Shown: positions 10,930 through 39,800 of the stretch, piece by piece
Numbering within the stretch: position 1 is the stretch's first letter
How the letters are laid out: the number at the start of each line of letters is the position of its first letter
NCBI RefSeq assembly: GCF_000737315.1
Contig: NZ_JMCB01000016.1
Span: 1-64,000 of the forward strand
Length of the DNA stretch: 64,000 nt
Direction of reading: 5' to 3'
Origin: Hyalangium minutum
Lineage (GTDB): Bacteria > Myxococcota > Myxococcia > Myxococcales > Myxococcaceae
Made by a program: the position numbers and the translations under genes
Notes under the pieces: model-generated
Told to the model about the DNA's origin: nothing
Database searches by the model: none
The model's input: only the letters and a program-made list of their open reading frames with translations

Positions 10930-11040
10930 GAGTCAGCACTCTAACCGGGGTTGGCGCGAGGGCCGCTTGCATCTCCACGCTCATGCCTGTGGAGTGCCCC
11001 CCGGCGAGCCCGGGCTGGACTGGGACGCCCCGAGGGCCCC

Positions 11041-17864: not shown

Positions 17865-19148
17865 TTACTTCGTCCAGATGGCCGAGATCCGGTCGCCCAG
17901 GCCGCTGAGCTGCGAGAGCCGGTAGCCCGCGTTGAGGCTGCCCACGGAGTTGTAGGTGGACTGATACGTGGCGCTCGTCATGTTGTAGTAGTGGATGAAG
18001 CCGGTGGACGTGGGGTGCCAGATGGCGGCGTAGCGGGTGCCGTTGGCCGTGGGGTACGCGCTGAAGCGCACCGGCCGCAGGCCCTGGCTGGCGTAGTCGT
18101 CGAACTTCGTGTTGTAGCTGGCCTGCGTCATGCCCCAGTACGTGGCGTAGCCGCTGTGCGCCTTCTTCACCCAGGTGGACGCGAACTTGATGCCGTTGTC
18201 CTCGTACACGGCCATGTCCACCTGCAGGTACCCGGCGTTCCACATCTCGCTCCACTTCGCGGACATCTGCGCCTCGGTCAGCCCGAAGTGCGTTTGGAAG
18301 GCGCCCTCGGTCGGCGTCCAGATGACGGTGAAGCGCGGGCCATTCGAGGTGGACAGCACGCTGATCTGCTCCGGGCGCCAGCCCGCCGCCTGGTACGTGG
18401 TGAAGTAGCTCTGGAACTGAGCCCCCGTCATGAGCGTGCGCACTGGGCGGCTGTCCACGTCCTGGAACGAGCCCGCCATGAGCGTGCTGCCGCTGGGCGA
18501 GTACGCCGTCAGCGTCACCGGCCACCGGTCGCGCCAGGCCCAGTAGTCGAAGCAGCCCTGGAAGCTGCCCGAGGGCAGATCATGGAAGTCGCGCCCGCAG
18601 GGAGGGTTGTTCTTGATGTTGTAGTAGTCCGTCCAGTGCTCGTGGTCGCTGCTGCTCACGTACTCGGAGTAGGTGATGTAGTACTCGTCGCCCACGTTCG
18701 GAGCCCACGGATCATTGACGTGCACGTAGTTGTTGGTGCTCGTGGCCAGGTAGCCCTTGGCCACCATCATGTGGCCGCCACCGCCCGTCCATCCCCAGGA
18801 GAAGGCCACGGGCCGGTTGGCGTTGATCTCGCTCACCAGCGAGGCCCAGCTCAGCGTGCCGGTGGTGTTGTAGCTGAAGCCGTACTTCTCGAACTCGGGC
18901 CAGCCGCCCTCCACGCAGGCCGAGGGCGTGGGGCTGTTGCAGCAGTCCGAGCGGCCCAAGCGCCGGTTGGCCTCGTCACACTGCGTGACGCGCGAGGCGC
19001 CCATGTAGTGCATGATCATCGACCCGCTCGCGGCCCAGCACCACATGCTCGTCTGCTGAGGCTCGAGCGGCACCGGCAGGCTGCCCGCGCTCGCGGCGGA
19101 CGCCGCGGTCATCAGGAAGGCCAGCGCGCTTCGCAAAAGGTTCTTCAT
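17865..19148 (-). CDS. Secreted papain-like cysteine protease (C70/C39-like) with C-terminal BTRD1 (polyglycine hydrolase-like) repeats
   Basis: Real start MKNLLRS at 19148; signal peptide; QQTSMWCWAAS (Cys), GGGHMMV (His), VNDPW; repeats GPRFTVIW, GIKFASTW, GTRYAAIW, RISAIW. Confidence 0.82.
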   Translation of the reverse strand: MKNLLRSALAFLMTAASAASAGSLPVPLEPQQTSMWCWAASGSMIMHYMGASRVTQCDEANRRLGRSDCCNSPTPSACVEGGWPEFEKYGFSYNTTGTLSWASLVSEINANRPVAFSWGWTGGGGHMMVAKGYLATSTNNYVHVNDPWAPNVGDEYYITYSEYVSSSDHEHWTDYYNIKNNPPCGRDFHDLPSGSFQGCFDYWAWRDRWPVTLTAYSPSGSTLMAGSFQDVDSRPVRTLMTGAQFQSYFTTYQAAGWRPEQISVLSTSNGPRFTVIWTPTEGAFQTHFGLTEAQMSAKWSEMWNAGYLQVDMAVYEDNGIKFASTWVKKAHSGYATYWGMTQASYNTKFDDYASQGLRPVRFSAYPTANGTRYAAIWHPTSTGFIHYYNMTSATYQSTYNSVGSLNAGYRLSQLSGLGDRISAIWTK

Positions 19149-19200
19149 GGCTTCGTTCTCCCGTGAGGTGTTCCGTGTCTCACTGGCAGAACGGCACCCC

Positions 19201-19247
19201 CCGGGGATCTTCCCGGCGGATTTTCCCGGGGCTTTTTCCGGGGACTC
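19201..19247. repeat. Four imperfect 12-13 bp direct repeats (CCGGGG-N-T tract) upstream of the protease
   Basis: ccggggatcttc / ccggcggattttc / ccggggcttttt / ccggggactc. Confidence 0.55.
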
Positions 19248-19279
19248 GGGCTGAGTGTTTTCGCGAAGTTGGCGCGCGC

Positions 19280-20722
19280 TCAGCGCAAGACTTCCCTCAG
19301 GGCCGTCTTCGCCGCGTGGTAGCCGGACATGCCATGGACCCCGCCTCCCGGAGGGGTGGAGGCCGAGCACAGGTAGAGCCCCTTCACGGGTGTCTTGTAC
19401 GGGTTCATCCGGGGCGCCGGCCGCGTGAAGATCTGCGAGAGCATGTTGGCGCCGCCGGTGATGTCGCCTCCGATGAGGTTGGCGTTGTGGCGTTCCATGG
19501 CGGCCGGGCCCATGACGTGGCGGGCGACGATGGTGTCCTTGAAGCCCGGGGCGAAGCGCTCCACCTGTTGCTCGATGCGGTCCGTGACGTCCAGGTCTCC
19601 GCCGTGAGGCACATGGCAGTACGCCCAGGCGGTCTGCTTCCCGGCGGGGGCGCGGCTGGCATCGAACGGGTACTGCACCAGCAGCACGTAGGGCTTCTCG
19701 GCGTAGCGCTGCTCCCAGGGGGCCTGCTCGGAGGCGGCGAGCTCGTCGAACGTGCCGCCCAGGTGAAGGGTGCCCGCGTCCCGGCAGGCAGCGGCCTTCC
19801 AGGGGATGGGCTCCGACAGCGCCCAGTCCACCTTGTGCACGCCCGGGCCGTAGCGGAACGCCTGGAGGTGCTTCCGGTAGCCTTCGGGCAGCCGGGAGCC
19901 GGCGAGCTTCAGGAGCTGCCGGGCGGTGACATCGCAGAGGATGGCCTTCGCCGGAGGCAGCTCGTCGAGGCTCTCGACGCGCGCGTTCAGCTCGATGTCG
20001 CCGCCCAGGGAGCGGAGGAGGGACGCCAGGGCATCGGCCAGCTTCTGGGAGCCGCCCTTCGCCACGGGCCAGCCTGCCGCGTGGGCGCTGGTGCCGAGCA
20101 CGAGCCCGAACGCGCTGGTGGCCATCGAGTCCAGCGGCAGAATGGAGTGCGCGGCCACACCCGCGAACAGGGCCTTGGCGGGGTCTCCATCGAACCACGT
20201 GTGCGCGAGGCCCCGGGCGGAGCGCAGCGCCATGAGCCCGAAGCGGGCCATGGCGAGGGGGTGCTTCGGGAAGGGATTGAAGGGGCCGAGCAGCTCCGGC
20301 ACGAGCTTCTCCCAGTCGCGCACGAGGGGCCCATAGAGCTGCTTCCAGGCCTCTCCGTCGCGGCCCAGCGTGGCGGCCGTCTCCTCCAGGGAGCGATAAG
20401 CCACGGCGGCGGTGCCGTCGTCGAGCGGATGGGCGTAGGGGGCCTTGGGGAAGACGAGCTCCAGCCCGTGCTCGGCCAGCGGGAGGCTGCGCAGGAACGG
20501 AGAGGCCACGGCCAGGGCCTGGACAGTGGAGCAGATGTCGTGGATGAAGCCGGGCAGCGTCAGCTCGGCGGAGCGGCATGAGCCGCCGACCGCGTCATTC
20601 GCCTCGCGCACCAGCACCGAGCGCCCCGCCTGGGCCAGCACGATGGCTGCCGCCAGTCCGTTGGGGCCTGCTCCGATCACCACCGCGTCGTAGGACTTCG
20701 CCAAGGTAGCCCCCACTCTCAT
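19280..20722 (-). CDS. NAD(P)/FAD-dependent oxidoreductase, phytoene dehydrogenase-like
   Basis: IGAGPNGL FAD motif, HDICS, GGDITGG, LYLCSASTPPGGGVHGMSG. Confidence 0.9.
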   Translation of the reverse strand: MRVGATLAKSYDAVVIGAGPNGLAAAIVLAQAGRSVLVREANDAVGGSCRSAELTLPGFIHDICSTVQALAVASPFLRSLPLAEHGLELVFPKAPYAHPLDDGTAAVAYRSLEETAATLGRDGEAWKQLYGPLVRDWEKLVPELLGPFNPFPKHPLAMARFGLMALRSARGLAHTWFDGDPAKALFAGVAAHSILPLDSMATSAFGLVLGTSAHAAGWPVAKGGSQKLADALASLLRSLGGDIELNARVESLDELPPAKAILCDVTARQLLKLAGSRLPEGYRKHLQAFRYGPGVHKVDWALSEPIPWKAAACRDAGTLHLGGTFDELAASEQAPWEQRYAEKPYVLLVQYPFDASRAPAGKQTAWAYCHVPHGGDLDVTDRIEQQVERFAPGFKDTIVARHVMGPAAMERHNANLIGGDITGGANMLSQIFTRPAPRMNPYKTPVKGLYLCSASTPPGGGVHGMSGYHAAKTALREVLR

Positions 20723-20908: not shown

Positions 20909-21844
20909 ATGAACGCGGAGGCGCTGGCCAACCTCGAGGAAGGCGCGAGCGGGGAGCGCACCCTGCGCATTGCAGGCCGCGAGCTGCGCCTGACCCACCT
21001 GGACAAGCCGTTCTGGCCGGAGCTGGGCATCACCAAGGGAGACCTGCTGCGCTACTACGCGCAGGTGGCGCCGGTGCTGCTGCCCCACGTCGCGGACCGG
21101 GCCATGGTGATGAAGCGGTACCCGAACGGGGCCTTCGGGCCGTTCTTCTTCATGAAGCGGGCGCCGGTGCCACGGCCGGAGTGGGTGAAGACGTGCTCCA
21201 TCACCCACGGCTCGGGCAACGTCATCGACTTCCCGGTGATTGGAGACCTGGCGTCGCTGCTCTGGGTGGTGAACCTGGGCTGCATCGACCTGAACCCCTG
21301 GTACGCGCGGTGCGATGACGTGCTGCGGCCGGACTACCTGCACTTCGATCTGGACCCGGGCCAGGCGCCCTGGGAGCAGGTGGTGGAAGTGGGCTTCATC
21401 CTGCGGGACGTGCTCAAGGGCCTGAAGATGCCGCCGCTGGTGAAGACCTCGGGCTCCAAGGGGCTGCACCTCTACATCCCCATTCGCCGGGGCCCGACGC
21501 AGAAGCAGGTGTGGACCATCGCGAAGGCGCTCGCGCAGGAGCTGGCCGCGGCGCACCCGGAGCTCGTCACCGCCGAGTACCGCATCGCCAAGCGCCCCGT
21601 GGGCCGCGTGCTCGTGGACTACAACCAGAACGCGCTGGGACGCACGCTGGCGTCCATCTACTCGGTGCGCCCCACGCCTGACGCCAGCGTGTCCACGCCC
21701 GTGACGTGGGAGGAACTGGAGAAGGGAGCGCGCATCGAGGACTTCACCCTGCGCAACGTGCCCGCCCGCGTGAAGCGCCGGGGAGACCTGTGGAAGCCGC
21801 TGCTGTCCGCGAAGGGGCGGGTGGACTTGGGGAGGTTCCTGTGA
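20909..21844 (+). CDS. ligD: Stand-alone LigD polymerase/primase domain (Prim-Pol, PolDom)
   Basis: LTHLDKPFWP, TKGDLLRYY, MKRYPNG, HFDLDPG, KTSGSKGLH, VDYNQN, YSVR. Confidence 0.9.
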   Translation: MNAEALANLEEGASGERTLRIAGRELRLTHLDKPFWPELGITKGDLLRYYAQVAPVLLPHVADRAMVMKRYPNGAFGPFFFMKRAPVPRPEWVKTCSITHGSGNVIDFPVIGDLASLLWVVNLGCIDLNPWYARCDDVLRPDYLHFDLDPGQAPWEQVVEVGFILRDVLKGLKMPPLVKTSGSKGLHLYIPIRRGPTQKQVWTIAKALAQELAAAHPELVTAEYRIAKRPVGRVLVDYNQNALGRTLASIYSVRPTPDASVSTPVTWEELEKGARIEDFTLRNVPARVKRRGDLWKPLLSAKGRVDLGRFL

Positions 21845-22932
21845 AGCCGCCACGTACCGCCGGGCCTGCCTCGTGGGCAGCGCTGGACTTGCCGCTGACG
21901 CCGCCGTACCCGCCCATGGAGGCGGAGCTGGTGCGGGACATTCCCCCGGGAGACGACTGGCAGTACGAGCCCAAGTGGGACGGCTTCCGGTGCATCGTCT
22001 ACCGGGACGGGGACCACGTGGAGCTGCAGTCCAAGGCGGGCCAGCCGCTGGGCCGGTACTTCCCGGAGCTCGTCGAGGCCGTGCGCGAGCTGTCGCCCCA
22101 GCGCTTCGTGCTGGATGGGGAGATCGTCATCCCGGAGGAGGGCGGGCTCTCGTTCGACGCGCTGCTGCTTCGCATCCACCCCGCGGCGAGCCGGGTGGCC
22201 ATGCTGGCGAAGCAGAGCCCCTCGCGGCTGTACGTGTTCGATCTGCTGGTGGACGCGCGGAGGCAGCTCCTCACCGACAAGCCGCTGATGGTGCGGCGGG
22301 AGAAGCTGGAGGCGTTCGCCTCGCGCTACCTGGAGCCAGCGGGGCAGATCCGGCTGTCACCGGCGACGCACTCGCAGAAGGTGGCGCGGGCGTGGCTGGG
22401 CTCGCAGGGGATGGATGGGGTGGTGGCCAAGCGGCTGTCTTCCCAGTACACGTCAGGCGAGCGCACGGGGATGGTGAAGGTGAAGCCACAGCGCACGGCG
22501 GACTGCGTGGTGGGAGGCTTCCGCTGGGCGGAGCGGCGGGAGAGTGGGGTGGGCTCCATCCTGCTGGGCCTGTACGGGAAGGACGGGCTGCTGCACCACG
22601 TGGGTTACTGCTCGAGCTTCTCGGCGAAGGACAAGAAGGAACTGGTGGAGCCGCTGGAGTCCCTCCGGGGTGCTCCGGGGTTCACGGGCAAGGCGCCGGG
22701 AGGCCCGAGCCGCTGGAGCAAGCGGGACGGGGCCTGGGAGCCGCTGCAAACGCGGTTGGTGGTGGAGGTGGCGTACGACCACTTCAGCCAGGGGCGTTTC
22801 CGGCACGGCACCCAGTTCGTGCGCTGGCGCCCGGACAAGGCGCCGGAGCAGTGCCGCATGGAGCAGGTGCTGCGGCGGCGCTCGCGGGCCGAGGTTCCCT
22901 ACGTGGAACCGGGTGACGTCCACGCCCCGTGA
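21841..22932 (+). CDS. ligC: ATP-dependent DNA ligase (LigC-type)
   Basis: Adenylation motif YEPKWDGFR, LDGEIV, VFDLL, DGVVAK, KVKPQRTADCVV, RFRHG; GTGA overlap with Prim-Pol. Confidence 0.88.
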   Translation: MKPPRTAGPASWAALDLPLTPPYPPMEAELVRDIPPGDDWQYEPKWDGFRCIVYRDGDHVELQSKAGQPLGRYFPELVEAVRELSPQRFVLDGEIVIPEEGGLSFDALLLRIHPAASRVAMLAKQSPSRLYVFDLLVDARRQLLTDKPLMVRREKLEAFASRYLEPAGQIRLSPATHSQKVARAWLGSQGMDGVVAKRLSSQYTSGERTGMVKVKPQRTADCVVGGFRWAERRESGVGSILLGLYGKDGLLHHVGYCSSFSAKDKKELVEPLESLRGAPGFTGKAPGGPSRWSKRDGAWEPLQTRLVVEVAYDHFSQGRFRHGTQFVRWRPDKAPEQCRMEQVLRRRSRAEVPYVEPGDVHAP

Positions 22933-23044
22933 GCTAGGGAGCGCGGACCCGCCTGCACCGCTGGAAGTCGTGGGTGTGATAACCCGTCTGCTGCTCTGGG
23001 AGCGAAAACACCGCCGCAGGCGTAACGCTGTGGAGGTAACGGCG

Positions 23045-23080
23045 GTACCGCGCTCTTGAGTGGGGGGAGGAGCGCGGTGC
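23045..23080. terminator. 11-bp stem hairpin
   Basis: gtaccgcgctc / gagcgcggtgc. Confidence 0.45.
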
Positions 23081-23107
23081 TGCTAGGGATACTTTACTCC
23101 GGGCAAC

Positions 23108-23130
23108 GGGTTCGATTCCCACCGCCTCCA
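23108..23130 (+). other. 3'-terminal fragment of tmRNA (ssrA) or an Ala-type tRNA; candidate att site
   Basis: GGGTTCGATTCCCACCGCCTCCA = T-loop plus acceptor 3' strand CGCCTCC-A (would give G3:U70 with a GGGGGCG 5' end). The 5' T-stem half is broken and no cloverleaf or tmRNA 5' end lies upstream. Confidence 0.65.
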
Positions 23131-23134
23131 TTCC

Positions 23135-23172
23135 GAGAATCCCAGTAATCTTGAAGGGGTGCTGGGTTTCTC
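23135..23172. terminator. Hairpin directly after the tmRNA-like fragment
   Basis: gagaatcccag...ctgggtttctc followed by a T-rich tract. Confidence 0.55.
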
Positions 23173-23206
23173 TTTGGCCTCGTTTTCATCATGTGCCCCA
23201 GTGTAC

Positions 23207-24849
23207 CAGGCCTGCTGCGTTCTCCTGGGTGAGGATGGGAAGAAGGCGCCTGGGAACGGGAGGTTACGCACAGAAGAGGGGGAACGGAATCGGAGACGAC
23301 CTTCCAGGTCGCTGTTCTGATCGCTTCCCTGGTGGGTAGGAAGTGCTCGACACTGAGGGAGCGGACAGAGGAGGAGGGACGGGGCCGGCGAGCCCCATCC
23401 CCCCAATGCCCCGTTCTGCGAGGCACGCGGAAGCGGGGCAGGAGGAGTCGAGCATGAGTGGACTGGGAGGGGACAACAGCGCCGAGTGCTGCAGCAGGCG
23501 CGGGTGGCGTGGGACAAGGCAGTGAAGGACCCGAGGGATGGCCGAGGCAGGAGGCATGGGCACCTGGGGTTGTTGGGGCTGGTGGTGGTGGCCTTCGCGG
23601 TGGGAAAGAAGGGGCTGAAGCAGGTGGCGCAGTTGGCCCAGGACGTGGGGGCGAGGACGCGAAAGCGGCTGGGACTGCCGCAAGCGGTAGTAGGCTCGAC
23701 GCTGTGGCGCTTGCTGGAGAAGCAGCCTGCGGCCGGGTTGCGGGAGACGATGATGGCGCAGGTGCAGCAGGTGCTCAAGGACCCGAGGACGCCGCGACTG
23801 GCGTTTCCCATGGGCGTGTTGAGCCTGGATGGAAAGAGCCTGTGGACCACCCACCAGGGCGAGGTGAAGGGCTTGGAGTCGGTGGCCAACAACGAGGCGG
23901 GCCGCGAGTTGTGGAGCCAGGGGGCGCTGCGGGCGGTGCTCACCAGCGTGGTGGCCGCGCCGTGCCTGGACATGGAGTTTGTCAGCGCCAAGCAGGGAGA
24001 GTCCCCCGCCTTGCGGCAGTTGTTTCCTCGGGTGGTGCAGGCCTATGGCGAGCACTTCGGGGTGGCGACGGGGGACGCGGGACTGACGGCCGCACCAAAC
24101 GCCGCGCTGGTGCGACAGTGGGGCAAGCACTACTGCTTCGGGCTGAAGGCCAATCAACCTACCCTCCATGAGTACGCGGTGCGTGTCATCGCCGCCAAGC
24201 AGTGTCCGGCTCGGGCGCGAACCCAGGAGCGGGCTCATGGCAAGACGGTGGTGCGTGAGCTGTGGACGCCCGCGCTTGAGCCGGGCGAGGTGGACTTCCC
24301 GGGAGCACGCATGCTGCTGCTGGTGCGCCAGCAGCACTGGGGCGACGACGGCACCTGCGAGGAGGAATACCGCTACTTTGTTACCTCCCTGGACACCACC
24401 CTCTTCACCTTCAAACAACTGCTGCGGCTCGTACGGGTGCACTGGGGCATCGAGAACCGGCACCACTGGACGCTCGATGTGGTGCTAGGCGAGGACGAGC
24501 ACCAGCCCTGCCGCCCCACCCGCACGGCACTGGAGGTGGTGGCCTGGTTGCGTGCCATAGCCTTCAACCTGCTCTCCTTCTTCCGCGCGCGTCTTCCTCT
24601 GGAAGGCCGCCACCTCGTGCAGTGGGATCGAGCCTGCGAACTGCTCCGCGACAGCCTCGTCCACGGGCGCAGGCTGGAGACTCTCCTCACTGCTGCCTGA
24701 GGGCTCGCCGGCCCTCCCTCCGCTCCTGGCCGCCACAGCCTTCGTTGCTCACGGCGCTCCGGCCGAGCGGCGGAGCTTTGTCTCAGCGCTCCTCGCTCTC
24801 ATACGGCGCCTTCACGCAACCGCAATCGCCCGACAACGCATCAGATCTG
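23207..24849 (+). mobile_element. Complete ISAs1-family insertion sequence (1643 bp) with 11-bp target-site duplication
   Basis: IRL caggcctgctgcgttctc vs reverse-complement IRR cagatctgatgcgttgtc (14/18); flanking direct repeat ccccagtgtac at 23196-23206 and 24850-24860. Confidence 0.88.
23486..24700 (+). CDS. ISAs1-family DDE transposase
   Basis: LSLDGK, TGDAG, FGLKANQP, VRVHWGIENRHHWTLDVVLGED hallmark; start codon uncertain. Confidence 0.9.
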   Translation: MLQQARVAWDKAVKDPRDGRGRRHGHLGLLGLVVVAFAVGKKGLKQVAQLAQDVGARTRKRLGLPQAVVGSTLWRLLEKQPAAGLRETMMAQVQQVLKDPRTPRLAFPMGVLSLDGKSLWTTHQGEVKGLESVANNEAGRELWSQGALRAVLTSVVAAPCLDMEFVSAKQGESPALRQLFPRVVQAYGEHFGVATGDAGLTAAPNAALVRQWGKHYCFGLKANQPTLHEYAVRVIAAKQCPARARTQERAHGKTVVRELWTPALEPGEVDFPGARMLLLVRQQHWGDDGTCEEEYRYFVTSLDTTLFTFKQLLRLVRVHWGIENRHHWTLDVVLGEDEHQPCRPTRTALEVVAWLRAIAFNLLSFFRARLPLEGRHLVQWDRACELLRDSLVHGRRLETLLTAA

Positions 24850-24934
24850 CCCCAGTGTACTCCTCGGGTGTCTCAAGCCCAGAACGGCGCGTGGCTGGGG
24901 GGGACGGGCCGATCCAACTCGTGCGCCGTGTGCT

Positions 24935-24978
24935 CTCTCTTGGGGGAACTAGGGAATAGTTCATGTTGCCCCAAAGAG
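24935..24978. promoter_or_regulatory. Nested inverted repeat upstream of the hamA-like gene
   Basis: Outer ctcttgggg/ccccaaagag stem enclosing the palindrome AACTA-GGGAA-TAGTT (24947-24961). Confidence 0.35.
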
Positions 24979-25172
24979 GAGGTGGCTCCAGTGGCAGGTA
25001 TAACCAAGGCGAGCAGGCTCTCTTACATGACCTGTCGTCCAAGAGCCGCGACTGGGCGGTTATGCCGGTCGGAAGTGGGCACATTTCCCTACCTGTGCGT
25101 AGAATCTCTTCCCGGAGACTGCTTGGCCCATAGTAATCTGCACTTTTCGCAAACCTCCACCAAGATCAGCGC

Positions 25173-25997
25173 ATGCACTTCTCGGTCATCGCCCAGCAGG
25201 ATACGCCACTGCCAGAAGCCCATCGCTGGGCAGCAGTAACGTGTGGGTGCAAGCCCGATGTCACCCTAGAAGAGGATGCTGCGGCAATGGTGCGGGCAGC
25301 CTACGGCGAGCAGGAATTCTTGGCTCAGCTTGGTCAGGTAGACCCTTCCGTTGCAGCAGACTTCGACCTCTCAAGCATCATGAAGGCATTTGGCCGAGGA
25401 CTACCGGATCCAAAGGCCGAAGGAGACAAGCCTAGGCGGCTTTCAAACTTCCGGGCTGAGACGGCAGAGGTTCTTGCAAAGGCTGCTTTGGCAGACGTCT
25501 ATGCAATTGATTTTCCTATTTCGGAGCAGGCCGGTAAGCAGAACGCGAACCAACCTGTCTTGGGATTCGACGGGTGCGGCTTCGTCACAATAGGCAACTC
25601 GACTGCTCTCGTGTTAGTGACCGTTAAAGGAAGTGACGATGCGAATCGGCCTCCTGCTATCGCTCAAGAACTCATCAAAGAGTGTACGAAAGCACCTAAG
25701 GAGCCAGACAAGCTGTGCCGCACTCTCACCGCGTTACTACTGCGAGTGAAGAGCGCAGCAGTGAAGGCTTCCATCATCAAGATGCTGGAACTTCTGGGGA
25801 AAGCTGTTCTCCCGAAGATTGTCGTTGCTCCAGTACTCGTTCGCGGAAAGATTTCGGCCCATTTAGATGACCTCGGTTCAGTCATGAACGCGGTCGCCAA
25901 CTTTTCCCCTGCCACGACGTATGGACTCGTATTAGGCGTAGGTATTACGCTCGGAGACTTTGGCCACTCAGTCATGTTGAAGGCGAGGGCTGACTGA
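25173..25997 (+). CDS. hamA: HamA-like PD-(D/E)XK nuclease-fold protein (Hachiman-like defence component)
   Basis: Motif order NFRAETAEVLA...KQNANQPVLGFDG...LVTVKGS matches the HamA/DUF1837-type E..D..(E)xK layout; TGATG coupling to the helicase; low GC. Confidence 0.62.
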   Translation: MHFSVIAQQDTPLPEAHRWAAVTCGCKPDVTLEEDAAAMVRAAYGEQEFLAQLGQVDPSVAADFDLSSIMKAFGRGLPDPKAEGDKPRRLSNFRAETAEVLAKAALADVYAIDFPISEQAGKQNANQPVLGFDGCGFVTIGNSTALVLVTVKGSDDANRPPAIAQELIKECTKAPKEPDKLCRTLTALLLRVKSAAVKASIIKMLELLGKAVLPKIVVAPVLVRGKISAHLDDLGSVMNAVANFSPATTYGLVLGVGITLGDFGHSVMLKARAD

Positions 25998-28900
25998 TGG
26001 ACGAGTTCCTCCAACTTGCTGAAGCCCAAGAAGTATCCACCCTCCTGAGCAAGGTTGATACCGCCGAACTTGCTGTTCGTCTGGGCATTGACACAGTAAC
26101 CACTCCACCAAAAGCCGAGGCTCGGCTGCGAGTAGCAGCAGTGACCGCCTTCGCTCAGCGAATTAACGAACTCGGCGGCTCTGACTTCCTTCGCAACGAC
26201 ACAGATGCACTCGACGCTGTACATGAACAGGCTTGGCGTGCGGTGTTCTATAAGTGGACTGGGTACCTCAGTGCCATGGAGGCACAAGGAGCGTCTCCAT
26301 CCATAGACGACCTCATCCTCGCAGTCGCTTCCGGCTTAGCAGCCCGGCGACCAAGCGACGTACGCTTCATGCTCCATCGTCCCTTGGTTGGAACCGCGTT
26401 GGCGAGAGCTGCTACTGCGCAGCCCATGTGGGACCAGCGGGTACGTAACGATATTGGACGGTCGTTAGTACATCTTGTGCGTCAGCGAGATCATGCTGAT
26501 GTCGCAGAATCTGGCGAAGTCATTCGTCAACTAATGGTGAATCAGAAGACTGCTGAATCGCAGCGGTTTGAGCAGCAGAGCACGAAGTCAGGTGCATTCG
26601 GGCTACTTGGCTTATATCACCTTGCTGAAGCGACGATTCGAACATCCGAGTTCCTCCTCTCTGGCGCTGCAGGAAATGGGGAAAGAAAGAATCGAGACTT
26701 TGCCCCACAATTGCGACGCCTTCTCACGCGTGCCGAAGAGTACCTCGAACTTGCAGGAGACCCAGAGGCACTGCTTTGGCTGACCGGTGTGGCACTCGTC
26801 TTGGAATGCATCCGGAGCGATTCTCTCTGGACCCAGGCACGAGGCATTTCAGAAGGTCTCGATGCACTACTCGCAACAATTACTAGCAATGAACGCGAAA
26901 AACCGGTCTTCAGTCTTCTGCCTTCTCAGCAAGAGGCTTTACGTCAGCATCTTCTTGACCCAACCAGAGTCGCTGTTGTCCTTCAAATGCCGACTAGCGC
27001 GGGAAAGACCCTTCTTGCCGAATTCGCGATAGTTCAAGCTTTTGAGGCATATAAGACTGGCACTCGCGCCATCTATCTCTGCCCCACTCGAGCATTGGCA
27101 ACCCAAATTCGTCGGACACTTGGGGAAGACTTGGCGAGAGTGGGTATTCAGGTATCGGTCGCTGGGAGCGCGTTCGAAGAGGACCCCTTTGAACTCGAAT
27201 TGCTTGAATCGTCCGATGGCGTAATTGTTGCCACTCCCGAGAAGCTCGATCTGCTGTTGAGAGCCCATCCTACATGGGCAGAAACACTGCGCCTCGTTAT
27301 CGTAGACGAAGCACACCTCCTTAAAGACTCCGAGCGAGGAGTGCGGTTAGAATTGCTTCTCGCGAACCTCCGTCGTGAGCATCCAGCGACACGCCTCCTA
27401 TTACTCACCCCCTTCGTCGAAAATGCCTCTCAGATTGCAAGTTGGCTTGGCGAAAGCCGTGGGACACCCATTTCGGTCCATTGGCGCCCTTCTCGCGTCC
27501 TTTTAGGCCTCGCAACAATCAAGGGTGGAGGAAAGAATCGTGCACTCACAGTTGAATGGAAGGAACCGCACGAGAGCGCGCGAAAGCCGGACAACCTCAA
27601 AGTGCATGTTGACGTGCCCGCCGGCTTAGTCAACTCCGCTCAAGATCGTGTCGCCTATCTTTATGAACGCTTTAGCAAGCTTGGCACAGTTTTGACAATA
27701 TGCAGCAATTCGCGTGTTGCTGCCGAACAAGTAGCCAGTAAGGTTGCTTTTGCTCAACCCGTGCTGGCTTCGACAACTCCGGCCCTCCGAGTTGCGATAG
27801 CACTAGCCCGCCATGACTATGGTGATGAGAGTCTCCTTGCAAATTGTCTTGAGCGGGGAGTTGCATTTCACCATTCTGCCTTGTCGCCCACTTTGAGGTA
27901 TCTTGTTGAGGACCAGATCCGCGCTGGCACCATCAAGTTTGTGGCAGCAACGTCGACCCTTGCACAAGGAATGAATTTCCCTGTGGCCGCAGTTCTTGTG
28001 CAGTCGGTTCACAAGCCCGAAGGCGCAGGTCCTCTGACGCCAGGAGAGTTCTGGAACATTGCTGGCCGTGCAGGCAGGGTTGGTGTTGCGGACCGTGGTG
28101 TTATTGTCTTCGTCAATCCCCAAGACCGCGAGCACTGGGAGAAATATTCCTCAAGCCTATCGGAGTCGCTCACATCGGCTCTTCTCTCAATTCTTGGGCA
28201 GTTAGGCGACGGGGCCTCGCTCAAAGAGCTTTATAAAAAGCATCCTGAACTCAGGCCTTTCATTCAGTACTTGGCGCATGCTGCCGCAACGTTAGGCCCA
28301 GCGAAGGCCACTGCCGACCTAGAGGAACTCCTCCAAGCAAGTTTGGCTAACAGACAGGTAAAGTCTGGAGTACAAGCACAGCGGCTCAGAACCATTGCTC
28401 GATCCTATCTTAGGGAGATCGGCGGTAAGAATACCGGGTATCTGAAGATTGCGGATACTACCGGACTTGGTTCCTTCAGTTTCGACTCGCTCTTCGCTCA
28501 GATCACGCATGATGAGGTGCTGCGCAGCGGTCCTGGGGAGATTCTGCGCCAGCGGCAGAGAGGGCTTGACCACCTTGTCGATGCGCTCCAATGGCTACCA
28601 GAACTCAACCTAGCTATCGGGCTTGGTGAAGGCCAGATGGATGTGCAAGCCGTCGCACGCATCGTCCAAGGTTGGATGGACGGGTCCCCCATTCATAAGC
28701 TTGCATCCGAATTCAGAGGGAAAGACCTTCCTGAACAGACTCGCAAAGCGGGTGCTTACGTTTACAGCAAGGTATCACAGACCATCTCGTGGGGCGCGCA
28801 CGCTTACCTTCGTGGCTGGAGCATGCGAGCAAATATCGACGTGGATAAGATTCCACCCAAAGATGCCATGCTGCCTACCTATATTCAGTACGGCGTCCAC

Positions 28901-29146
28901 TCTCCCGAGGCGGCGGTGGCCTCTCTTCTAGGAGTACCTAGAGCTTTTTCACAAGCTGTGGGTGATGAATTCCGTCATGCGCACGGCGCACTCACGCCAT
29001 CTGCGGCGTCCAAATTTAAAGCGTTCGTGGAAACGGCCGACGTCGCCCAATGGGAGCGTATTGTGGCTCGGTGTTCGCTAAATGTCCGAGCTGAGGATGT
29101 ACGCATCATCTGGAGGCAAATGCAGGGTATCGCAGAGCGAGGATAA
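25997..29146 (+). CDS. hamB: Ski2-like SF2 DEAH helicase with N-terminal helical domain (HamB-like)
   Basis: PTSAGKT (I), PTRALA (Ia), TPEKLD (Ib), DEAH (II), HHSAL, ATSTLAQGMN (V), AGRAGR (VI); about 300-aa helical N-terminus; low GC. Confidence 0.85.
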   Translation: MDEFLQLAEAQEVSTLLSKVDTAELAVRLGIDTVTTPPKAEARLRVAAVTAFAQRINELGGSDFLRNDTDALDAVHEQAWRAVFYKWTGYLSAMEAQGASPSIDDLILAVASGLAARRPSDVRFMLHRPLVGTALARAATAQPMWDQRVRNDIGRSLVHLVRQRDHADVAESGEVIRQLMVNQKTAESQRFEQQSTKSGAFGLLGLYHLAEATIRTSEFLLSGAAGNGERKNRDFAPQLRRLLTRAEEYLELAGDPEALLWLTGVALVLECIRSDSLWTQARGISEGLDALLATITSNEREKPVFSLLPSQQEALRQHLLDPTRVAVVLQMPTSAGKTLLAEFAIVQAFEAYKTGTRAIYLCPTRALATQIRRTLGEDLARVGIQVSVAGSAFEEDPFELELLESSDGVIVATPEKLDLLLRAHPTWAETLRLVIVDEAHLLKDSERGVRLELLLANLRREHPATRLLLLTPFVENASQIASWLGESRGTPISVHWRPSRVLLGLATIKGGGKNRALTVEWKEPHESARKPDNLKVHVDVPAGLVNSAQDRVAYLYERFSKLGTVLTICSNSRVAAEQVASKVAFAQPVLASTTPALRVAIALARHDYGDESLLANCLERGVAFHHSALSPTLRYLVEDQIRAGTIKFVAATSTLAQGMNFPVAAVLVQSVHKPEGAGPLTPGEFWNIAGRAGRVGVADRGVIVFVNPQDREHWEKYSSSLSESLTSALLSILGQLGDGASLKELYKKHPELRPFIQYLAHAAATLGPAKATADLEELLQASLANRQVKSGVQAQRLRTIARSYLREIGGKNTGYLKIADTTGLGSFSFDSLFAQITHDEVLRSGPGEILRQRQRGLDHLVDALQWLPELNLAIGLGEGQMDVQAVARIVQGWMDGSPIHKLASEFRGKDLPEQTRKAGAYVYSKVSQTISWGAHAYLRGWSMRANIDVDKIPPKDAMLPTYIQYGVHSPEAAVASLLGVPRAFSQAVGDEFRHAHGALTPSAASKFKAFVETADVAQWERIVARCSLNVRAEDVRIIWRQMQGIAERG

Positions 29147-29589
29147 CCTTCCCGTGCATATGATCAGTAGGCTTAATCCAATTGCCTACAGCGGCAACCT
29201 CTACATGTCTGCAGCGGTTCGCACATTCGCAATTCTCTGGGACACCTCCTTTCTGGATGCTTGAAAGACAAAGTCGTCAGCGCTTGAGTCCTAAAGCAGA
29301 ACCCAAGCATCGACTTTCTCATAGAGGTCATATGAAGCGGTCGTTCGGGGCGCAGTTGGAGTTCTGCTCATATGTTCCTTGGCATGGGCTCAAGACAGGC
29401 AGTTCCAAAGTTTCAGGTTAATTGGGCGACTGCAGACTGGGTGAACACTGGCCGATCTTGCCTCTCCTTGGAGGGTGATGGCTCCCTGCAAGGCAGAGCC
29501 AAAGAATTGGATGAAAGACACGGTCTTGCCTTGCTCACTGCTCCTGCTCCGCTTCTGGCGGTGCTCCTGAGAGATAGGAACCACCACCT

Positions 29590-29883
29590 GGACGAGAACG
29601 TGGAACCTCAGAACCCTCTGTTCGAGCTCGCGAGGACTGATCGATTCGATGTGGGCACCGCCGTTGACGACAGTCGGAGATACGACGACGTCGCCTATTG
29701 GCGGATTCGCGGAAGAGAGCAGCAATTGATTGATTTCCTCGGGGGAGCCCGCTCCGACACCGGAGAGCCCTACCAGACCGAGAACGCCGTGCGCGGCGTG
29801 GCAAAAGACAATCCGCAAGGCCGACGCTTCCACGATGCCGCCACGGAACTGTGGGCCCACTTCACCCTTACGCGGGATACTAG
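29590..29883 (+). pseudogene. Orphan C-terminal fragment of a URI/GIY-YIG-like polymorphic nuclease toxin
   Basis: RIRGREQQLIDFLGGARSDTG...ENAVRGVAKDNP..RFHDAATELW. Restoring one G gives WGPLHPYAGY* ending at TAG 29881-29883. No N-terminus present. Confidence 0.6.
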
Positions 29884-29885
29884 AG

Positions 29886-30291
29886 ATGCTGCGGATCTAC
29901 AAGCCGGGCTCGTTCTTGAGAATACCTCTTGCCGACGGCTCTTGGGGGTACGGCCGGGTGCTCAAGTTGCCGCATGATGCCTATTACGATTAATGGTTCG
30001 CCATATGGAGGAGAGAGCGTGGGAACTCATCGGGTGGAGGGAACTGGAGGAGCCGTTTTCTCAACCTATCCTCCACTATACCCAGGACATTGGGAACTTC
30101 CGCGACTGCAGGATCTTCGGCACCGCAGGCAATTCGAGGAGCGCGGAACCCCAAGAGGTATTGGGCTTGAGTACTCGGCTGTCTGGGAAGAGGTGGGAGT
30201 CGAGCAACGTCTGCTCGACTCCTTCATGGGGCGGCCCAACGCCTCGGTGGAGCGCTTGAAGGTGCGCCTGAAACTAGGAGGCTCCCCATGA
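29886..30291 (+). pseudogene. Disrupted Imm26-family immunity gene
   Basis: Three frames join: MLRIYKPGSFLRIPLADGSWGYGRVL..YYD* / VRHMEERAWELIGWRELEE..QDIGNFRDCRIF / GLEYSAVWE..EQRLLDSFMGRPN..ERLKVRLK. Confidence 0.7.
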
Positions 30292-31658
30292 AGCGCTGGG
30301 CGGTTGTGCTGCTGTTCGCATCCCTCGTGGGGTGCACCCCAACGAAGGTCGTCCGCCTGGACACAGGCCAGGGCAGGCCGATCATCCACGTCCCGCGCCG
30401 TGACTTGGGGCCGGTGGAGGTGAGCCAAGAGAAGTTCAAGGAAGCCGTAGCCGAGCACTCCCCCTCCGTGCCAGCCGTGGAGCGGCCTCTAGAATACGCC
30501 GGGCGGTTGTTCGATGTGCCGGAGCGAAGCGGTTGGTTCTGGTACGAAGGCAGGAGTCAGCGGCTCATGGCCTCGGAGCCGGGGAGTACCCCGAACCTGC
30601 GATTGCTGCCCGAGGACGGGGAACTGAAGCGCCGCTACCTGCTGTGGTGCGAGGAACTCTGGGGCGGCGGAGATTGCCTGCGGTTGCTGGTGGACAAGCC
30701 CTTCCTGGATGGGGATGCCAAGTACGCGCTGGCCATGGCCATTGCTCACAGCAAGGTGCTGGGGGCCATGAAAGAGGAACTCGCCCGGATGGTGAACCCC
30801 CAGGCGGTGGTGGCGACCGTAGTGGGCGGCCTGACCATGTACGCAATATTGCTCGCCCTGCCCGAGCCGGTGAGCAAGGGCGTGGCGGCGCTGTTGACGC
30901 TGGGGGCCATCGCCTACCTGGGCTGGGACACGGTATGGCGGCTCATGGATGGGTGGCTGGTGTTGATGAAGGAAGTGGATCAGGCCACCACCTTCGACGG
31001 CATCTCCGCGTCCGGAGAGAAGTTCGGGGACACAATGGGGGAGAAGGCGGCACGAGCCTTCGTCATGTTGGGCACGGTGGCCCTGGGAAACACGGCTTCG
31101 GGGATGGCTGCGACATTGCCGAAGTTGCCAGGGGCCGGGCAAGCGGCGGTGGTGGCCGAGACGCAGCTGAACCTCCGCTTCACGGCCCCTTCTCTGGCCC
31201 AGGTGGAGTCGGTCGCCATCACTGCCGAGGGCGTCACCATCGCGCTGGCTCCCAATGCAGTCGCCATGGTGGCTCGCGACAGTTCAAGCAGCACCGTGGG
31301 AAGATTCAGGGCAGGCACTTACGGTGATCTCAAGAATGCTGGCATCAAGGACGCGCACCATGTGATTCAAGATGCCGCCGTTCGTGAGCTGCCCGGATAT
31401 GACAGTCGTGCAGCCCCTGCTGTTGAACTGAAGGGGCCAGCGACGCGCGTTGGCACTGCACACTATGAGGCGACTCAGGTTCAGCGTCAGGCTGGGGGAG
31501 GGACCTATGCGGACGAGCGCAGGATCGCCTATGAGGCCCTGCGACGCGCGGGACTGTCTCATGAGGAGGCGCAAACGCTGATTGGCCGCGCCGATGACTA
31601 CTTCAAATCGATCGGTGTCACGCCATCAACACCGACCAGAATCCCTGGCAACCGGTAG
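30288..31658 (+). CDS. sitA5: SitA5-like polymorphic lipoprotein toxin with predicted His-containing nuclease C-terminal domain
   Basis: Lipobox LVGC (Cys16), VVRLDTGQG, conserved hydrophobic middle (LLALPEPVSKGVAALLT), low-GC C-terminal domain DAHHVIQDAA...HYEAT...RIPGNR. Confidence 0.8.
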   Translation: MKRWAVVLLFASLVGCTPTKVVRLDTGQGRPIIHVPRRDLGPVEVSQEKFKEAVAEHSPSVPAVERPLEYAGRLFDVPERSGWFWYEGRSQRLMASEPGSTPNLRLLPEDGELKRRYLLWCEELWGGGDCLRLLVDKPFLDGDAKYALAMAIAHSKVLGAMKEELARMVNPQAVVATVVGGLTMYAILLALPEPVSKGVAALLTLGAIAYLGWDTVWRLMDGWLVLMKEVDQATTFDGISASGEKFGDTMGEKAARAFVMLGTVALGNTASGMAATLPKLPGAGQAAVVAETQLNLRFTAPSLAQVESVAITAEGVTIALAPNAVAMVARDSSSSTVGRFRAGTYGDLKNAGIKDAHHVIQDAAVRELPGYDSRAAPAVELKGPATRVGTAHYEATQVQRQAGGGTYADERRIAYEALRRAGLSHEEAQTLIGRADDYFKSIGVTPSTPTRIPGNR

Positions 31659-31669
31659 GAGGCCCCACC

Positions 31670-32005
31670 GTGGACATGAAATTGATGGGTCAGGTTCGGC
31701 GTCTGATAGAGGATCTGGCGGCAGGGCGGTATGCGGAGATCGCCGCGGATGGTCGAGCAGGGCGCCTCACTGAGGAGGAGTTGAGAACGGCTGTCGAGCA
31801 GTATGGGCGGACTCTCGTTCCCTTGCCAGTTGACGGTGAGATGCTTGTAGATGTCTATGCGCAGACGTCTCAGCCGGGTGCGGTCACCCTAGATGTACCT
31901 CTGTGGACCCGGGAGGAAGGCCGCAGCGACCTGACACTTTCGGTGACGGCGATCAAGCAGGGTGAAGCCTACACAGTCGAAGTGGACGATCTGCATGTTC
32001 TTTAG
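31670..32005 (+). CDS. Cognate immunity protein (SitI-like)
   Basis: 111 aa, 11 bp after the toxin with GGAGG RBS; LDVPLWTREEGRSDLTL motif; lower GC like the toxin C-terminus. Confidence 0.75.
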   Translation: MDMKLMGQVRRLIEDLAAGRYAEIAADGRAGRLTEEELRTAVEQYGRTLVPLPVDGEMLVDVYAQTSQPGAVTLDVPLWTREEGRSDLTLSVTAIKQGEAYTVEVDDLHVL

Positions 32006-36809: not shown

Positions 36810-39800
36810 ATGCGACAGGTCTTCAGGTGGATGATCGGGGTCCTCCTCTGCTGCGGCTGTGCGGCAGGACCGAAGCTCGGTGAGACGCAACCGGATGCCC
36901 TGCTGCTGGAGGCGCAGTCCGATTTTGACGAGGCGACGAAGCTCAAGGGGGCGGCCAGGTACTCCGAGGCCCTTGTCCAGGCCCAGCATGCGCTCACGCT
37001 CAGGGAGGCCGTCCTCGTCGCCACGCATCCAGACATCGCCAGCTGTCTGACGCTGATGGGAGAACTGCAGGTACGGCAAGGGGAGATGGACGCTGCCGAG
37101 TCTCTGCTGAAGCGAGCACTCGCCATCCGTGAGGCCGCCCTGCGCCCGGGCCACCCGGACGTCGCCGAGCCCCTCCACCAGCTCGCCCTCCTCTACAGGC
37201 TCCAGGGGCTGTTCGACCAGGCCCGGCCGCTCTACCAGCGCGCGCTGGCCATCCGCGAGGCCGCCCTGGGCCCGAACCACCCCGACGTCGCCCAGTCTCT
37301 CAACGGCCTCGCCGATCTCTACGAGAACCAAGGCTTGTACGGCCAGGCCGAGCCGCTCTACCAGCGCGCGCTGGCCATCCGCGAGGCCGCCCTGGACCCG
37401 AACCACCCCGACGTCGCCAGCTCGCTCAACAACCTCGCCATCCTCTACATGGACCTGGGCCTGCCCAGCCAGGCGGAGCCGCTCTACCAGCGCGCGCGGG
37501 CCATCCTGGAGGGCCGTCTGGGCAAGAGCCACCCCCACGTCGCCGTGATCCTCAGCAACCTGGGCGGCATCTACCTCCACCAGGGGTTGTACGGCCGGGC
37601 CGAGCCGATCCTCCAGCGCGCGTTGGCCATCCGCGAGTCAGTGCTCGGCGTGAACCACCCGGACGTCGCCGAGATCCTCTTCAACCTCGGCAATCTCTAC
37701 AAGCGCCAGGGCTTGTACAGCCGGGCGGAGCCGCTCTACCAGCGCTCGCTCTCCATCGTGGAGAAGGTCCTGGGCCCGAGCCACCCCTTCTTCGCCAACT
37801 CGCTCAACAACCTCGCCAACCTCTACACGGTCCAGGGGTTGTACGGCCAGGCCGAGCCTCTCTACCAACGCGCGCTCTCCATCCAGGAGGCGGCCTTGGG
37901 CTCGAGCCACACCGACGTCGCCAGCTCGCTCAACAACCTCGCCAACCTCTACACGGCCCAGGGCTTGTACGACCGGGCCGAGCCGCTCTATCAGCGCGCT
38001 CTCTCCATCCGAGAGGCGGTCCTCGGCAAGAGCCATCCCAATGTCGCGATGACGCTCGGCAACATCGCCCTGCTGCGTGTGAAGCAGCAGCGCCTCCCCG
38101 AGGCCCTGCTGCTCTACACCCGCGCGTTGACCATCTCCGAGCAGCGTCTGCGGCACGAGGCGCTCGACTTCTCCGAATCGCGTCTGGCCACCTTCCTCCA
38201 GTACCTGCGCGACGACGAGCAGACGCTCTACTCCCTGCTGCGCGCACATTCCTCGGACGCCCGCGTGCAACGACTGGCGCTCAGCGCCTCGCTTCTGCTC
38301 AAGGGCCGCTCCGTCGAGGAGACGGCCCGGATCTCCCGCGCCCTGTACCGCACCTTGGACTCCAAGGACCGCGAGACCTTCGAGCAGCTCCGGAGCCTGC
38401 GCACCCAGCTGGCCGCGCTCTCCTTCGAGGGGTCCGGCGGCCTCTCCCCGGAGGACTACCAGCTGCGCCTCAAGGCGCTGGCCGACGAGGGCGACGCGCT
38501 CGAAGCCGCCCTCGCCACACGCTCCGCTTCCCTGCGCGCGTTCGCTGCCCTGCCTCCCACCGCCGACATCGTCGATCGCGTCGCCGCTTCCCTTCCCAAG
38601 GACGGCGCACTGGTCGAGTTCATCGCCTATGAGGACATGTCCATCGACTTCCTCACGGGTACGCTGCCTGCGACGAGCGTCGGCCAGCCTCGCTACCTGG
38701 CGCTGGTGCTCTTCCCGGATGCGTCCACGCGGGCCTTGGACCTCGGACCCGCCGAGCGCATCGACGTGGCCGCCACGCGCCTGCGCGCCGCCCTGGCCAA
38801 CCGCGATGCCTCCTTCCAGCCCCTGGCCCAGGAGCTCTACCGGCTCGCCTTCAAGCCCCTCCTGCCGCTGCTGGGCCGCACCCGCCGCCTCTGGCTATCT
38901 CCGGACGGGCAGTTGGGGTTGGTCCCTTTCGCCGCCCTCCACGATGGCCGCAGCTACCTCCTGGACTCCTTCGACTTCACCTGGCTCACCTCTGGCAGGG
39001 AGCTGCTCCCGCGTCCCCCCGGATTCTCTCCTTCCTCCTCCGTCGTCGTCCTCGCGGATCCGGACTTCACCGCCGCACCTCCCGCCACGGCCTTGGCCTC
39101 CGGCGACCTGCGTCTTTCGCCTTCCACGCGGTCCGGCGCGCTCGAGCGCTTCTTCTCCACTGTGGACCGGGCTCTGCCGGGCAGCGACTGGGTGCCTCTG
39201 CCGGGCACGCGTCAGGAGGCCCAGGGCATCCAGCGCCTCCTGCCCCAGGCGCAGCTCTTCCTCGGCCCCGAGGCCACCAAGCAGCGGCTGCTCGAGCTGC
39301 CCGCTCCGGGCATCCTTCACCTGGCCACCCACGGCTTCTTCCTGGCGGACACCCCGGCAGTCTCCCCCGCGAACTCGCGCGCTGTGGTGCACTTTGGTGC
39401 GCTCGGAGATGATCCCCTCGCTCCCATCCCCCGGGATCCCCTGCTGCGCTCGGGGCTCGCGTTCGCGGGGGCGCGCGCCGTGGCGTCCGAGGCCTCTGCG
39501 CCTTCCGAGTCCTCGGCCCATGCGACGATCGCCACCGCGCTGGAGTTGGCGGGGCTGGATCTGTGGGGCACCCAGCTCGTCGTCCTGTCGGCGTGCGACA
39601 CCGCCCGAGGCGATGTCCAACCCGGTCAGGGGGTCTACGGCCTTCGACGCGCGCTGGTGGTGGCGGGGGCCGAGACGGTGGTCATGAGCCTGTGGAAGGT
39701 GAGGGACGACTCCACCCACCTGCTCATGAGGGACTACTACCGCAACCTGTTGGCTGGCCAGGGGCGTGCCTCCGCCCTGCGCGAGGCCATGCGCTCGCTG

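Follow-up and report, generated by a model that had tools for sequence, protein, structure and literature searches.

A horizontally acquired two-gene cassette of Hyalangium minutum as a probable, sequence-divergent member of the Hachiman anti-phage systems

We analysed a 64 000-nt stretch of DNA from Hyalangium minutum (positions 1 to 64 000 of contig NZ_JMCB01000016.1; this whole stretch is referred to as the window, and coordinates are given on it unless stated otherwise). It carries a cassette of two overlapping genes that was horizontally acquired and is probably a Hachiman-type anti-phage cassette belonging to a sequence-divergent subfamily. The census of Hachiman, a broad-spectrum defence system, has been built on DUF1837/HamA sequence models. 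The first gene of the cassette (A; 25173–25997, plus strand) encodes a 274-aa HamA-like protein with a predicted PD-(D/E)xK fold, and the second (B; 25997–29146, plus strand) encodes a 1049-aa HamB-like helicase of the Ski2/Hel308 type in superfamily 2 (SF2). The stop codon of A (TGA, 25995–25997) and the start codon of B (ATG, 25997–25999) overlap by 1 nt, and the resulting TGATG (25995–25999, plus strand) suggests translational coupling. A preliminary description of the window, made from its letters, had proposed this pair as a Hachiman variant; its coordinates and its TGATG junction agree exactly with the open reading frame (ORF) listing and the sequence, and one copy each of A and B is found in the window. 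We adopt the Hachiman reading because of the fold and profile homology of the two proteins, the linkage of their genes, purifying selection, the mobile and defence contexts of related loci, and the occurrence of HamC genes in some relatives. By analogy with the characterized systems, a function in defence is likewise probable.

The AlphaFold model of protein A (predicted local distance difference test, pLDDT, 86) has an alpha-beta-beta-beta-alpha-beta core, as in PD-(D/E)xK enzymes, and its top Foldseek matches in PDB are the HamA chains 8vx9_A and 8vxy_A of the Escherichia coli HamAB complex. The match to 8vx9_A has an E-value of 2.5e-5, a probability of 1.0 and template modelling (TM) scores of 0.54/0.57 over 288 columns: protein A, a single domain, aligns end to end with the 259-aa HamA, and FokI, MspJI and EcoO109I come next in the ranking, in keeping with the restriction-endonuclease fold and HamA similarity suspected from the sequence. 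For protein B (pLDDT 87) the best PDB matches are HamB chains (8vx9_B, 8vxa_A and 8vxy_B; E 2e-30). The whole 1049-aa protein is aligned with 8vx9_B (TMq 0.74 over 1190 columns), whereas Hel308, Hjm and Pol-theta helicases align to the core of B only (TMq ∼0.46–0.53; 0.46 for Hel308). A single solved complex, E. coli HamAB (8VX9), supplies the best match of both proteins, one chain for A and the other for B, and this, together with the conserved neighbourhood of the two genes (see below), bears out the Hachiman variant reading of the preliminary description. The models settle, at the level of predicted structure, the homology of both proteins to HamAB, and we are highly confident that the cassette proteins are HamAB homologues.

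The model of B consists of an N-terminal all-helical domain (residues ∼1–300, the long helical N-terminus that had been noticed in the sequence), a RecA1/RecA2 core (∼305–720) and a helical C-terminal region. In HamB the N-terminal helical domain binds HamA and sets HamB apart from other Ski2-like helicases (PMC12278908); that B shares this domain follows from its full-length structural alignment to HamB. There are no strands after residue ∼722 in the model and the C-terminal third is all-helical, so B has no OB-like barrel, a feature limited to type III-A HamB (PMC13064477).

At the sequence level, A can be linked to bona fide HamA proteins only through profiles, because the direct models miss their thresholds (the scores are given below, where the Hachiman reading is weighed). 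Protein A has no NCBIfam match, no Pfam domain beyond a sub-threshold HamA, and no meaningful sequence match among PDB chains (the best one, with E 1.2, is a histone acetyltransferase). A search with the A-family profile against 1.84 billion cluster representatives, however, collected 127 proteins, 47 of them with E-values below 1e-30, and 32 out of the 98 full-length relatives detected by this profile match Pfam HamA. The profile built from these 98 sequences matches 8vx9_A in PDB at E 4e-5; this alignment pairs the helix Glu of E. coli HamA with E99 of protein A, the Asp of its RGED with D133, E138 with T150 and K140 with K152. A further comparison, by hhalign, of 40 close relatives of A with 24 distant relatives carrying EVK (Pfam HamA matches 12 of these) yields a probability of 99.75% and E 2e-27 over 270 columns.

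Protein B matches the Pfam families DEAD (2e-25), ResIII and Helicase_C, and many of the PADLOC HamB models (HamB1 up to 9.5e-72). Walker A (residues 331–338, MPTSAGKT), the DEAH box (437–440, in VDEAH from residue 436), motif VI (687–696) and motifs Ia, Ib and V are kept in 14 out of 14 helicases of the subfamily, and together with the Pfam, HamB1 and PDB HamB matches they agree with the earlier description of B as an intact Ski2-like DEAH helicase. That description had also pointed out that motif III reads LTP (in LLLLTPF from residue 467; TPF at 471–473) and not SAT. The motif was read correctly, but it gives no sign of impairment: TPF is a signature of the subfamily, found in all 14 helicases, and E. 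coli HamB, which is experimentally active, reads SAI at this motif. The idea that motif III marks a defective helicase is ruled out by these two observations.

By sequence, on the other hand, the helicase core scores best against Hel308/Hjm: among solved structures Hel308 scores 3e-45 and E. coli HamB (8vx9_B) 4.5e-42 (AbpB is a weak match, 4.5e-8), and the NCBIfam model PRK02362 scores 4e-61. These matches, the gene of an ATP-dependent DNA ligase 2 kb upstream of the cassette and the response of Hachiman itself to DNA damage could be accommodated by a different reading, in which the two genes form, in place of an immune system, a DNA-repair module of a housekeeping or accessory kind, its nuclease and Hel308-like helicase acting at stalled forks or damage. 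But B falls far short of the Hel308 equivalog cutoffs (207 versus 887 bits for NF002654 and 173 versus 1200 bits for NF040935), and its full-length architecture fits HamB, not Hel308: Hel308/Hjm share the RecA1/RecA2/ratchet core with B, but have neither the ∼300-aa N-terminal helical domain nor a partner nuclease, and their structural match covers less than half of B. The ligase gene lies outside the transferred block, with an insertion sequence (IS) in between. The distribution of the cassette, to which we now turn, also speaks against a repair module, and we consider this reading very improbable.

In a scan of 185 579 genomes (one per species), the subfamily was found at 15 loci scattered sporadically over at least eight phyla. 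These loci are from Chloroflexota, Chromatiaceae, Nannocystaceae, Gemmatimonadota, Bacteroidales, Planctomycetota, Verrucomicrobiota and several Alphaproteobacteria; further loci were found on metagenome contigs, in Archangium gephyra, Burkholderia gladioli and Laspinema, and on rhizobial plasmids. No gene other than A and B is conserved from locus to locus. Elsewhere the pair has among its neighbours type I methyltransferases, a GmrSD/HEC-05 enzyme and Uma2/PDC-S03 nucleases, as well as tyrosine and rve integrases, relaxase/TrbL genes, VapBC and IS elements. Against a repair module we count this sporadic spread, the copies on plasmids and beside restriction–modification genes, the foreign guanine + cytosine (GC) content of the cassette of H. 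minutum and its adjoining IS, and the fact that close relatives hold the cassette in different contexts.

Genes A and B are strictly linked and co-evolving. Wherever a related locus extends far enough downstream, the helicase gene comes directly after A, which is the conservation as neighbours that the Hachiman variant reading had called for. The two reading frames overlap in 15 loci (in 14 loci besides that of the window by 1, 4 or 8 nt, and by more where the start of an ORF is over-extended), and the pairwise-identity matrices of A and B correlate, with a Pearson coefficient of 0.93 (Mantel p ∼2e-4).

The cassette was acquired by horizontal transfer, as is seen from its foreign GC content, the adjoining IS, and the mere 4.04 kb that it has in common with the orthologous locus of A. 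gephyra. The GC content is 0.53–0.56 over positions ∼25000–30000 and 0.66–0.72 in both flanks (a difference already noticed by eye in the preliminary description), and the cassette as a whole has 55% GC in a genome of ∼68%. When positions 22000–32000 were compared with A. gephyra by blastn, the segment 25101–29136 (plus strand) was the only DNA in common (83.8% identity, 4040 bp) and the flanks in A. gephyra were unrelated; we take this segment as the extent of the transferable cassette, a unit slightly larger than the A and B coordinates first given. A megablast search of the cassette against plasmids gave no match, and neither did a tblastn search of A against phages, so that we have no evidence of a phage-borne cassette from this search.

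The A. gephyra orthologues share 88% (A) and 90% (B) protein identity with those of H. minutum, and the A. gephyra protein A has the same GFDGCG and TVK. The ratio of nonsynonymous to synonymous substitution rates (dN/dS) between the two species is 0.11 for A and 0.07 for B at a dS of ∼0.6–0.8: both genes are under strong purifying selection. Among 58 strongly conserved columns, protein A of the window differs from the consensus at just three, a mid-range count within the family. The dN/dS values and these column counts rule out a degenerating copy, and TVK does not mark decay. Nor do we think that the cassette is currently without function in its host, as a decaying or selfish passenger, an idea that might be drawn from its recent acquisition, from its standing alone with an IS on one side and broken ORFs downstream, and from a relative in a Mesorhizobium metagenome-assembled genome (MAG) with frameshifts in both genes. 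Both frames of the H. minutum cassette are intact, the selection just described acts on them, the helicase motifs are all in place and the deviations at conserved columns are unremarkable, which leaves this idea with very little probability.

Several results weigh against a Hachiman assignment. The models that define HamA miss protein A: Pfam HamA (PF08878) gives an E-value of 0.096 and 13 bits, with a cutoff of 25 bits, and PADLOC HamA1 gives 5e-3 and 14 bits. The helicase family of the pair is catalogued by PADLOC as a guilt-by-embedding candidate, PDC-M23. No other PADLOC system is found within ∼10 kb of the cassette, the only match being to the TPR repeats of a TPR-CHAT protein (described below). 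Moreover, the HamA motif is D-E(x)K (PMC12278908), and this conserved motif is incomplete in A, where T150 replaces the Glu of ExK; some relatives have Leu or Ile, which are unable to bind metal, at the same position. In E. coli HamA the substitutions E138A/K140A abolish defence (PMC12278908), and in Streptococcus thermophilus HamA so does E147A (PMC13064477).

The candidate active-site residues of A are E96/E99 on a helix (residues 92–110), D133 at the start of a strand (134–140) and T150-V-K152 on the next one (143–154). All the motifs that had been named for A are found in the protein (R94-A-E96-T-A-E99, G131-F-D133-G and T150-V-K152), and A retains three residues of the HamA site: E99 (the helix Glu), D133 (the Asp) and K152 (the Lys). 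We compared these positions in the 98 relatives, consisting of 40 close-family representatives (the close family has ∼40 full-length clusters at 50% identity) and 58 more distant proteins. E99, D133 and K152 are kept in 98 out of 98, canonical EVK proteins included; in the close family V151 and E170 are invariant as well. The position two before the Lys, which the preliminary description had singled out for alignment, is Q in 31 out of the 40 close-family proteins (L in three, S in two, E in two, I in one and T in one), the sole T being that of the window, and in the 58 distant relatives it is E in 56 and Q in two. E170 (codon 25680–25682) is specific to the subfamily: it is found in 40 out of 40 close-family members, and in the distant relatives position 170 is Q, K or another residue, with E in seven only. 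The subfamily is thus marked by D-QxK together with an additional Glu, invariant and located on the following helix; TVK is one more variant of this signature. It was correctly noted before that T150 occupies the position of the Glu, but TVK is a lineage variant of QVK, and not of ExK in an otherwise canonical protein.

What this substitution means for the function of A can be read in two ways. In one, A is no longer a nuclease and acts as a regulatory or adaptor (DNA-binding) subunit, with the activity supplied by the helicase or by another partner (HamC in Rhizobiales, or a host nuclease). The metal-binding Glu is replaced (T here, and E in just two out of 40 representatives), many DUF1837 domains are dead scaffolds (AbpA, and types I-B to I-D; PMC11914072; PMC12278908), and accessory genes follow B in some relatives (HamC, a Uma2 nuclease, GmrSD), all of which would suit an adaptor. 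However, a dead site should not keep its Glu, Asp and Lys in every one of 98 relatives. Catalytically dead DUF1837 domains usually carry a fused effector domain (PMC11914072), whereas A has a single domain and most loci have no third gene; and Gln at the position in question supports catalysis in the Cap4 domain of AbpA-type HamA, where the D45/Q58/K60 site is active (PMC11914072). An adaptor role for A is, in our view, unlikely.

In the other reading, which we favour because D-Q-K works in Cap4 and A has no fused effector, A retains catalysis with a rearranged metal site. We propose this for the subfamily, and for the TVK protein of the window we lean, with some reserve, towards a nuclease activity that has been kept. 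In Cfr10I, SxK plus a distal Glu make up the active site. It is possible that the acid of A was relocated in a similar way, to E170. Alternatively, E170 could be a residue in contact with HamB, as the alignment places it beside the third of the segments that form the HamB interface in E. coli HamA (residues 159–199, PMC12278908). A bolder possibility, which we put forward only tentatively and hold to be rather doubtful, is that the subfamily is a mechanistically distinct Hachiman branch that gave up the ExK glutamate, either by moving the acid to E170 or by turning A into a non-catalytic licensing or adaptor subunit. If this were true, either outcome would show how the effector site of Hachiman evolves, and there would be grounds to fold PDC-M23 and its unmodelled sister family (see below) into Hachiman as a new type; a move of the acid to E170 would amount to an active-site migration of the Cfr10I kind, which has yet to be described in HamA.

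Under the Hachiman reading with an active A, the cassette might work as follows. B, as a Ski2/Hel308-type DNA helicase, would survey DNA with A docked on its N-terminal helical domain. Infection would yield 3′ single-stranded ends or damaged DNA, which would load into the helicase; ATP hydrolysis would then remodel the AB complex and license A as a PD-(D/E)xK nuclease, and A would degrade DNA indiscriminately, leading to abortive infection. We infer the formation of the complex, the DNA-damage trigger, the nuclease activity and the protection from homology with the E. coli and S. thermophilus HamAB systems.

Among known systems, the cassette is most readily compared with Hachiman type I (E. 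coli ECOR31 HamAB, 8VX9, and S. thermophilus HamAB), which has the same gene order: a small PD-(D/E)xK gene followed by a gene for a helicase of ∼1000–1170 aa. Besides the fold matches of both proteins to the 8VX9 chains, the two have in common the N-terminal helical domain of HamB, absent from Hel308, and the helix Glu, Asp and Lys of HamA. They differ in sequence, as A and B have only 13–20% identity to the 8VX9 chains and A stays below the Pfam and PADLOC thresholds for HamA; in the active site, which is D-ExK in type I, D-QxK in the subfamily and D-TxK here, with the invariant E170 in addition; and in motif III of the helicase, which is TPF in B. AbpAB (a Cap4-DUF1837 fusion variant, 8ZUE) likewise combines a non-canonical HamA-like site with a Ski2-like helicase. 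But AbpA has a Cap4 nuclease at its N-terminus, and its DUF1837 domain is dead (PMC11914072), whereas A is a single domain that keeps the Glu, Asp and Lys.

The closest catalogued relative of the helicase is PDC-M23, one of 145 guilt-by-embedding phage defence candidates (cassette CAS_00096, with 161 RefSeq instances; Payne et al. 2024 preprint). PDC-M23 is likewise a two-gene cassette of a nuclease-like protein and a helicase, embedded in restriction–modification or BREX loci. Protein B matches the PADLOC model PDC-M23B (PDLC04531) end to end, with an E-value of 4.8e-177 and 589 bits (residues 56–1044 of B, 53–1059 of the 1060 model positions). PDC-M23A (PDLC04527) is also the best PADLOC match of protein A, but this match is weak and partial (E 1.3e-10, 39 bits, residues 97–243, 57% of the model). 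When 10 relatives of A were compared with PADLOC, six had no match at E ≤ 0.01 and four had weak PDC-M23A matches (13–19 bits). Judged from these scores, the A family would sit next to the modelled PDC-M23A family as a sister group, without clearly belonging to it, and it seems to be effectively unmodelled. The earlier suggestion of a distinct subfamily outside current models is largely right: the HamA models miss A, though the helicase is already in PADLOC as part of PDC-M23. Our literature search found no publication naming PDC-M23, and the word Hachiman has zero occurrences in the main text of the Payne et al. 2024 preprint. The RefSeq label of the A relative that we checked (on the Ensifer plasmid pT173a) is ‘hypothetical protein’.

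Some relatives of the cassette have a third gene. HamC2 (PADLOC, 5e-82) is found directly after B in Sphingomonas (locus L018) and Allosphingosinicella (L019), and HamC (DUF3223, ‘DCL family protein’) directly after B in Mesorhizobium (L021) and on an Ensifer conjugative plasmid (L027); the HamC genes of L018, L019 and L027 are at about 10970–11720 in each locus. These HamC-bearing relatives tie the subfamily to Hachiman type II of PADLOC (HamA, HamB and HamC/DUF3223; the classification is summarized in PMC11914072); their A and B proteins are of the subfamilies seen here. Two-gene loci predominate in the subfamily, though, and that of H. minutum is one of them. A tblastn search of the 64-kb window with three HamC/DCL proteins gave a best E-value of at least 1.1, and the ORFs downstream of B have no Pfam or PADLOC match that marks HamC, consistent with the earlier remark that no third gene follows the pair; by tblastn there is no HamC in the A. 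gephyra locus either.

The A proteins of L018 and L019 match no PADLOC HamA model, and three-gene loci may therefore be missed or be partly called Hachiman type II. In the Mesorhizobium MAG (L021, 7001–10917), the homologues of A and B are each split over two frames (tblastn segments 17–152/153–273 for A and 83–563/562–1045 for B), and the HamC-like gene after them is intact; the split may reflect decay of this copy or a fault in the assembly.

We regard the finding as solid, though not startling. The DUF1837/HamA models miss a whole branch of HamA, of ∼40 clusters at 50% identity, from Myxococcota, Chloroflexota, Cyanobacteria, Planctomycetota, Gemmatimonadota, Bacteroidota, Verrucomicrobiota and Alpha-, Beta- and Gammaproteobacteria. 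An anonymous PADLOC candidate, PDC-M23, is now linked to Hachiman, and two-gene and HamC-containing forms are tied to one subfamily. For annotation, A gains a family and a signature (RSE..E / GFDGWG / QVKG[ST][DE] / PP...E), and B gains the helicase signature LLLTPF. The natural series of E, Q, T/S and L/I at the position of the ExK Glu, with E170 as a compensating-looking residue, offers a test of how much of D-ExK the effector needs.

The cassette lies 370 bp downstream of an ISAs1-type IS (23369–24727, plus strand), which we treat as context and not as part of the system. Its transposase ORF (23486–24700) matches the Pfam families DDE_Tnp_1 and DDE_Tnp_1_assoc, its imperfect terminal inverted repeats of 27 nt are at 23369–23395 and 24701–24727, and the IS is present in a single copy in the window. 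Co-mobilization of the cassette by an ISAs1-type transposase is unsupported, the transposase at the Laspinema locus being just 25% identical. There are no tRNA genes in the window, and the cassette is therefore not part of a tRNA-targeted island; around the cassette we found no convincing direct repeats, only short ones at chance level. A scan for promoters and terminators likewise performed at chance (one promoter-like site, at 25076–25105, versus 1.7 expected), and was left unused as evidence. A defence-island context is unsupported for the window itself, as its flanking genes have no PADLOC matches except for the TPR one.

Downstream of B there is a stretch of ∼1.1 kb of low GC content (29150–30290; 0.55–0.60) with short or broken ORFs, which is absent from the A. 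gephyra locus. It includes an Imm26-like N-terminus (29730–29993, E 9e-4) with an apparent continuation in other frames, probably a frameshifted remnant of an immunity gene. The next region (30288–32005) holds two genes, one for a 456-aa protein with a lipoprotein-type signal (MKRWAVVLLFASLVGC) and no Pfam or PADLOC match and, 12 bp later, one for a 111-aa DUF7668 protein (E 6e-22); from its sequence, this arrangement resembles a polymorphic toxin/immunity pair. Farther downstream (36810–39908) is a gene for a 1032-aa protein that has TPR repeats and, at its C-terminus, a CHAT protease domain (1.3e-69). TPR-CHAT is an NLR/STAND-like architecture that is sometimes tied to conflict systems. On the other side, the ATP-dependent DNA ligase gene (21706–22932; LigD-type ligase domain) is just upstream of the IS, and a gene on the minus strand (17865–20579), also outside the transferred block, encodes a 904-aa Peptidase_C70/C39-like protein with BTRD1 repeats.

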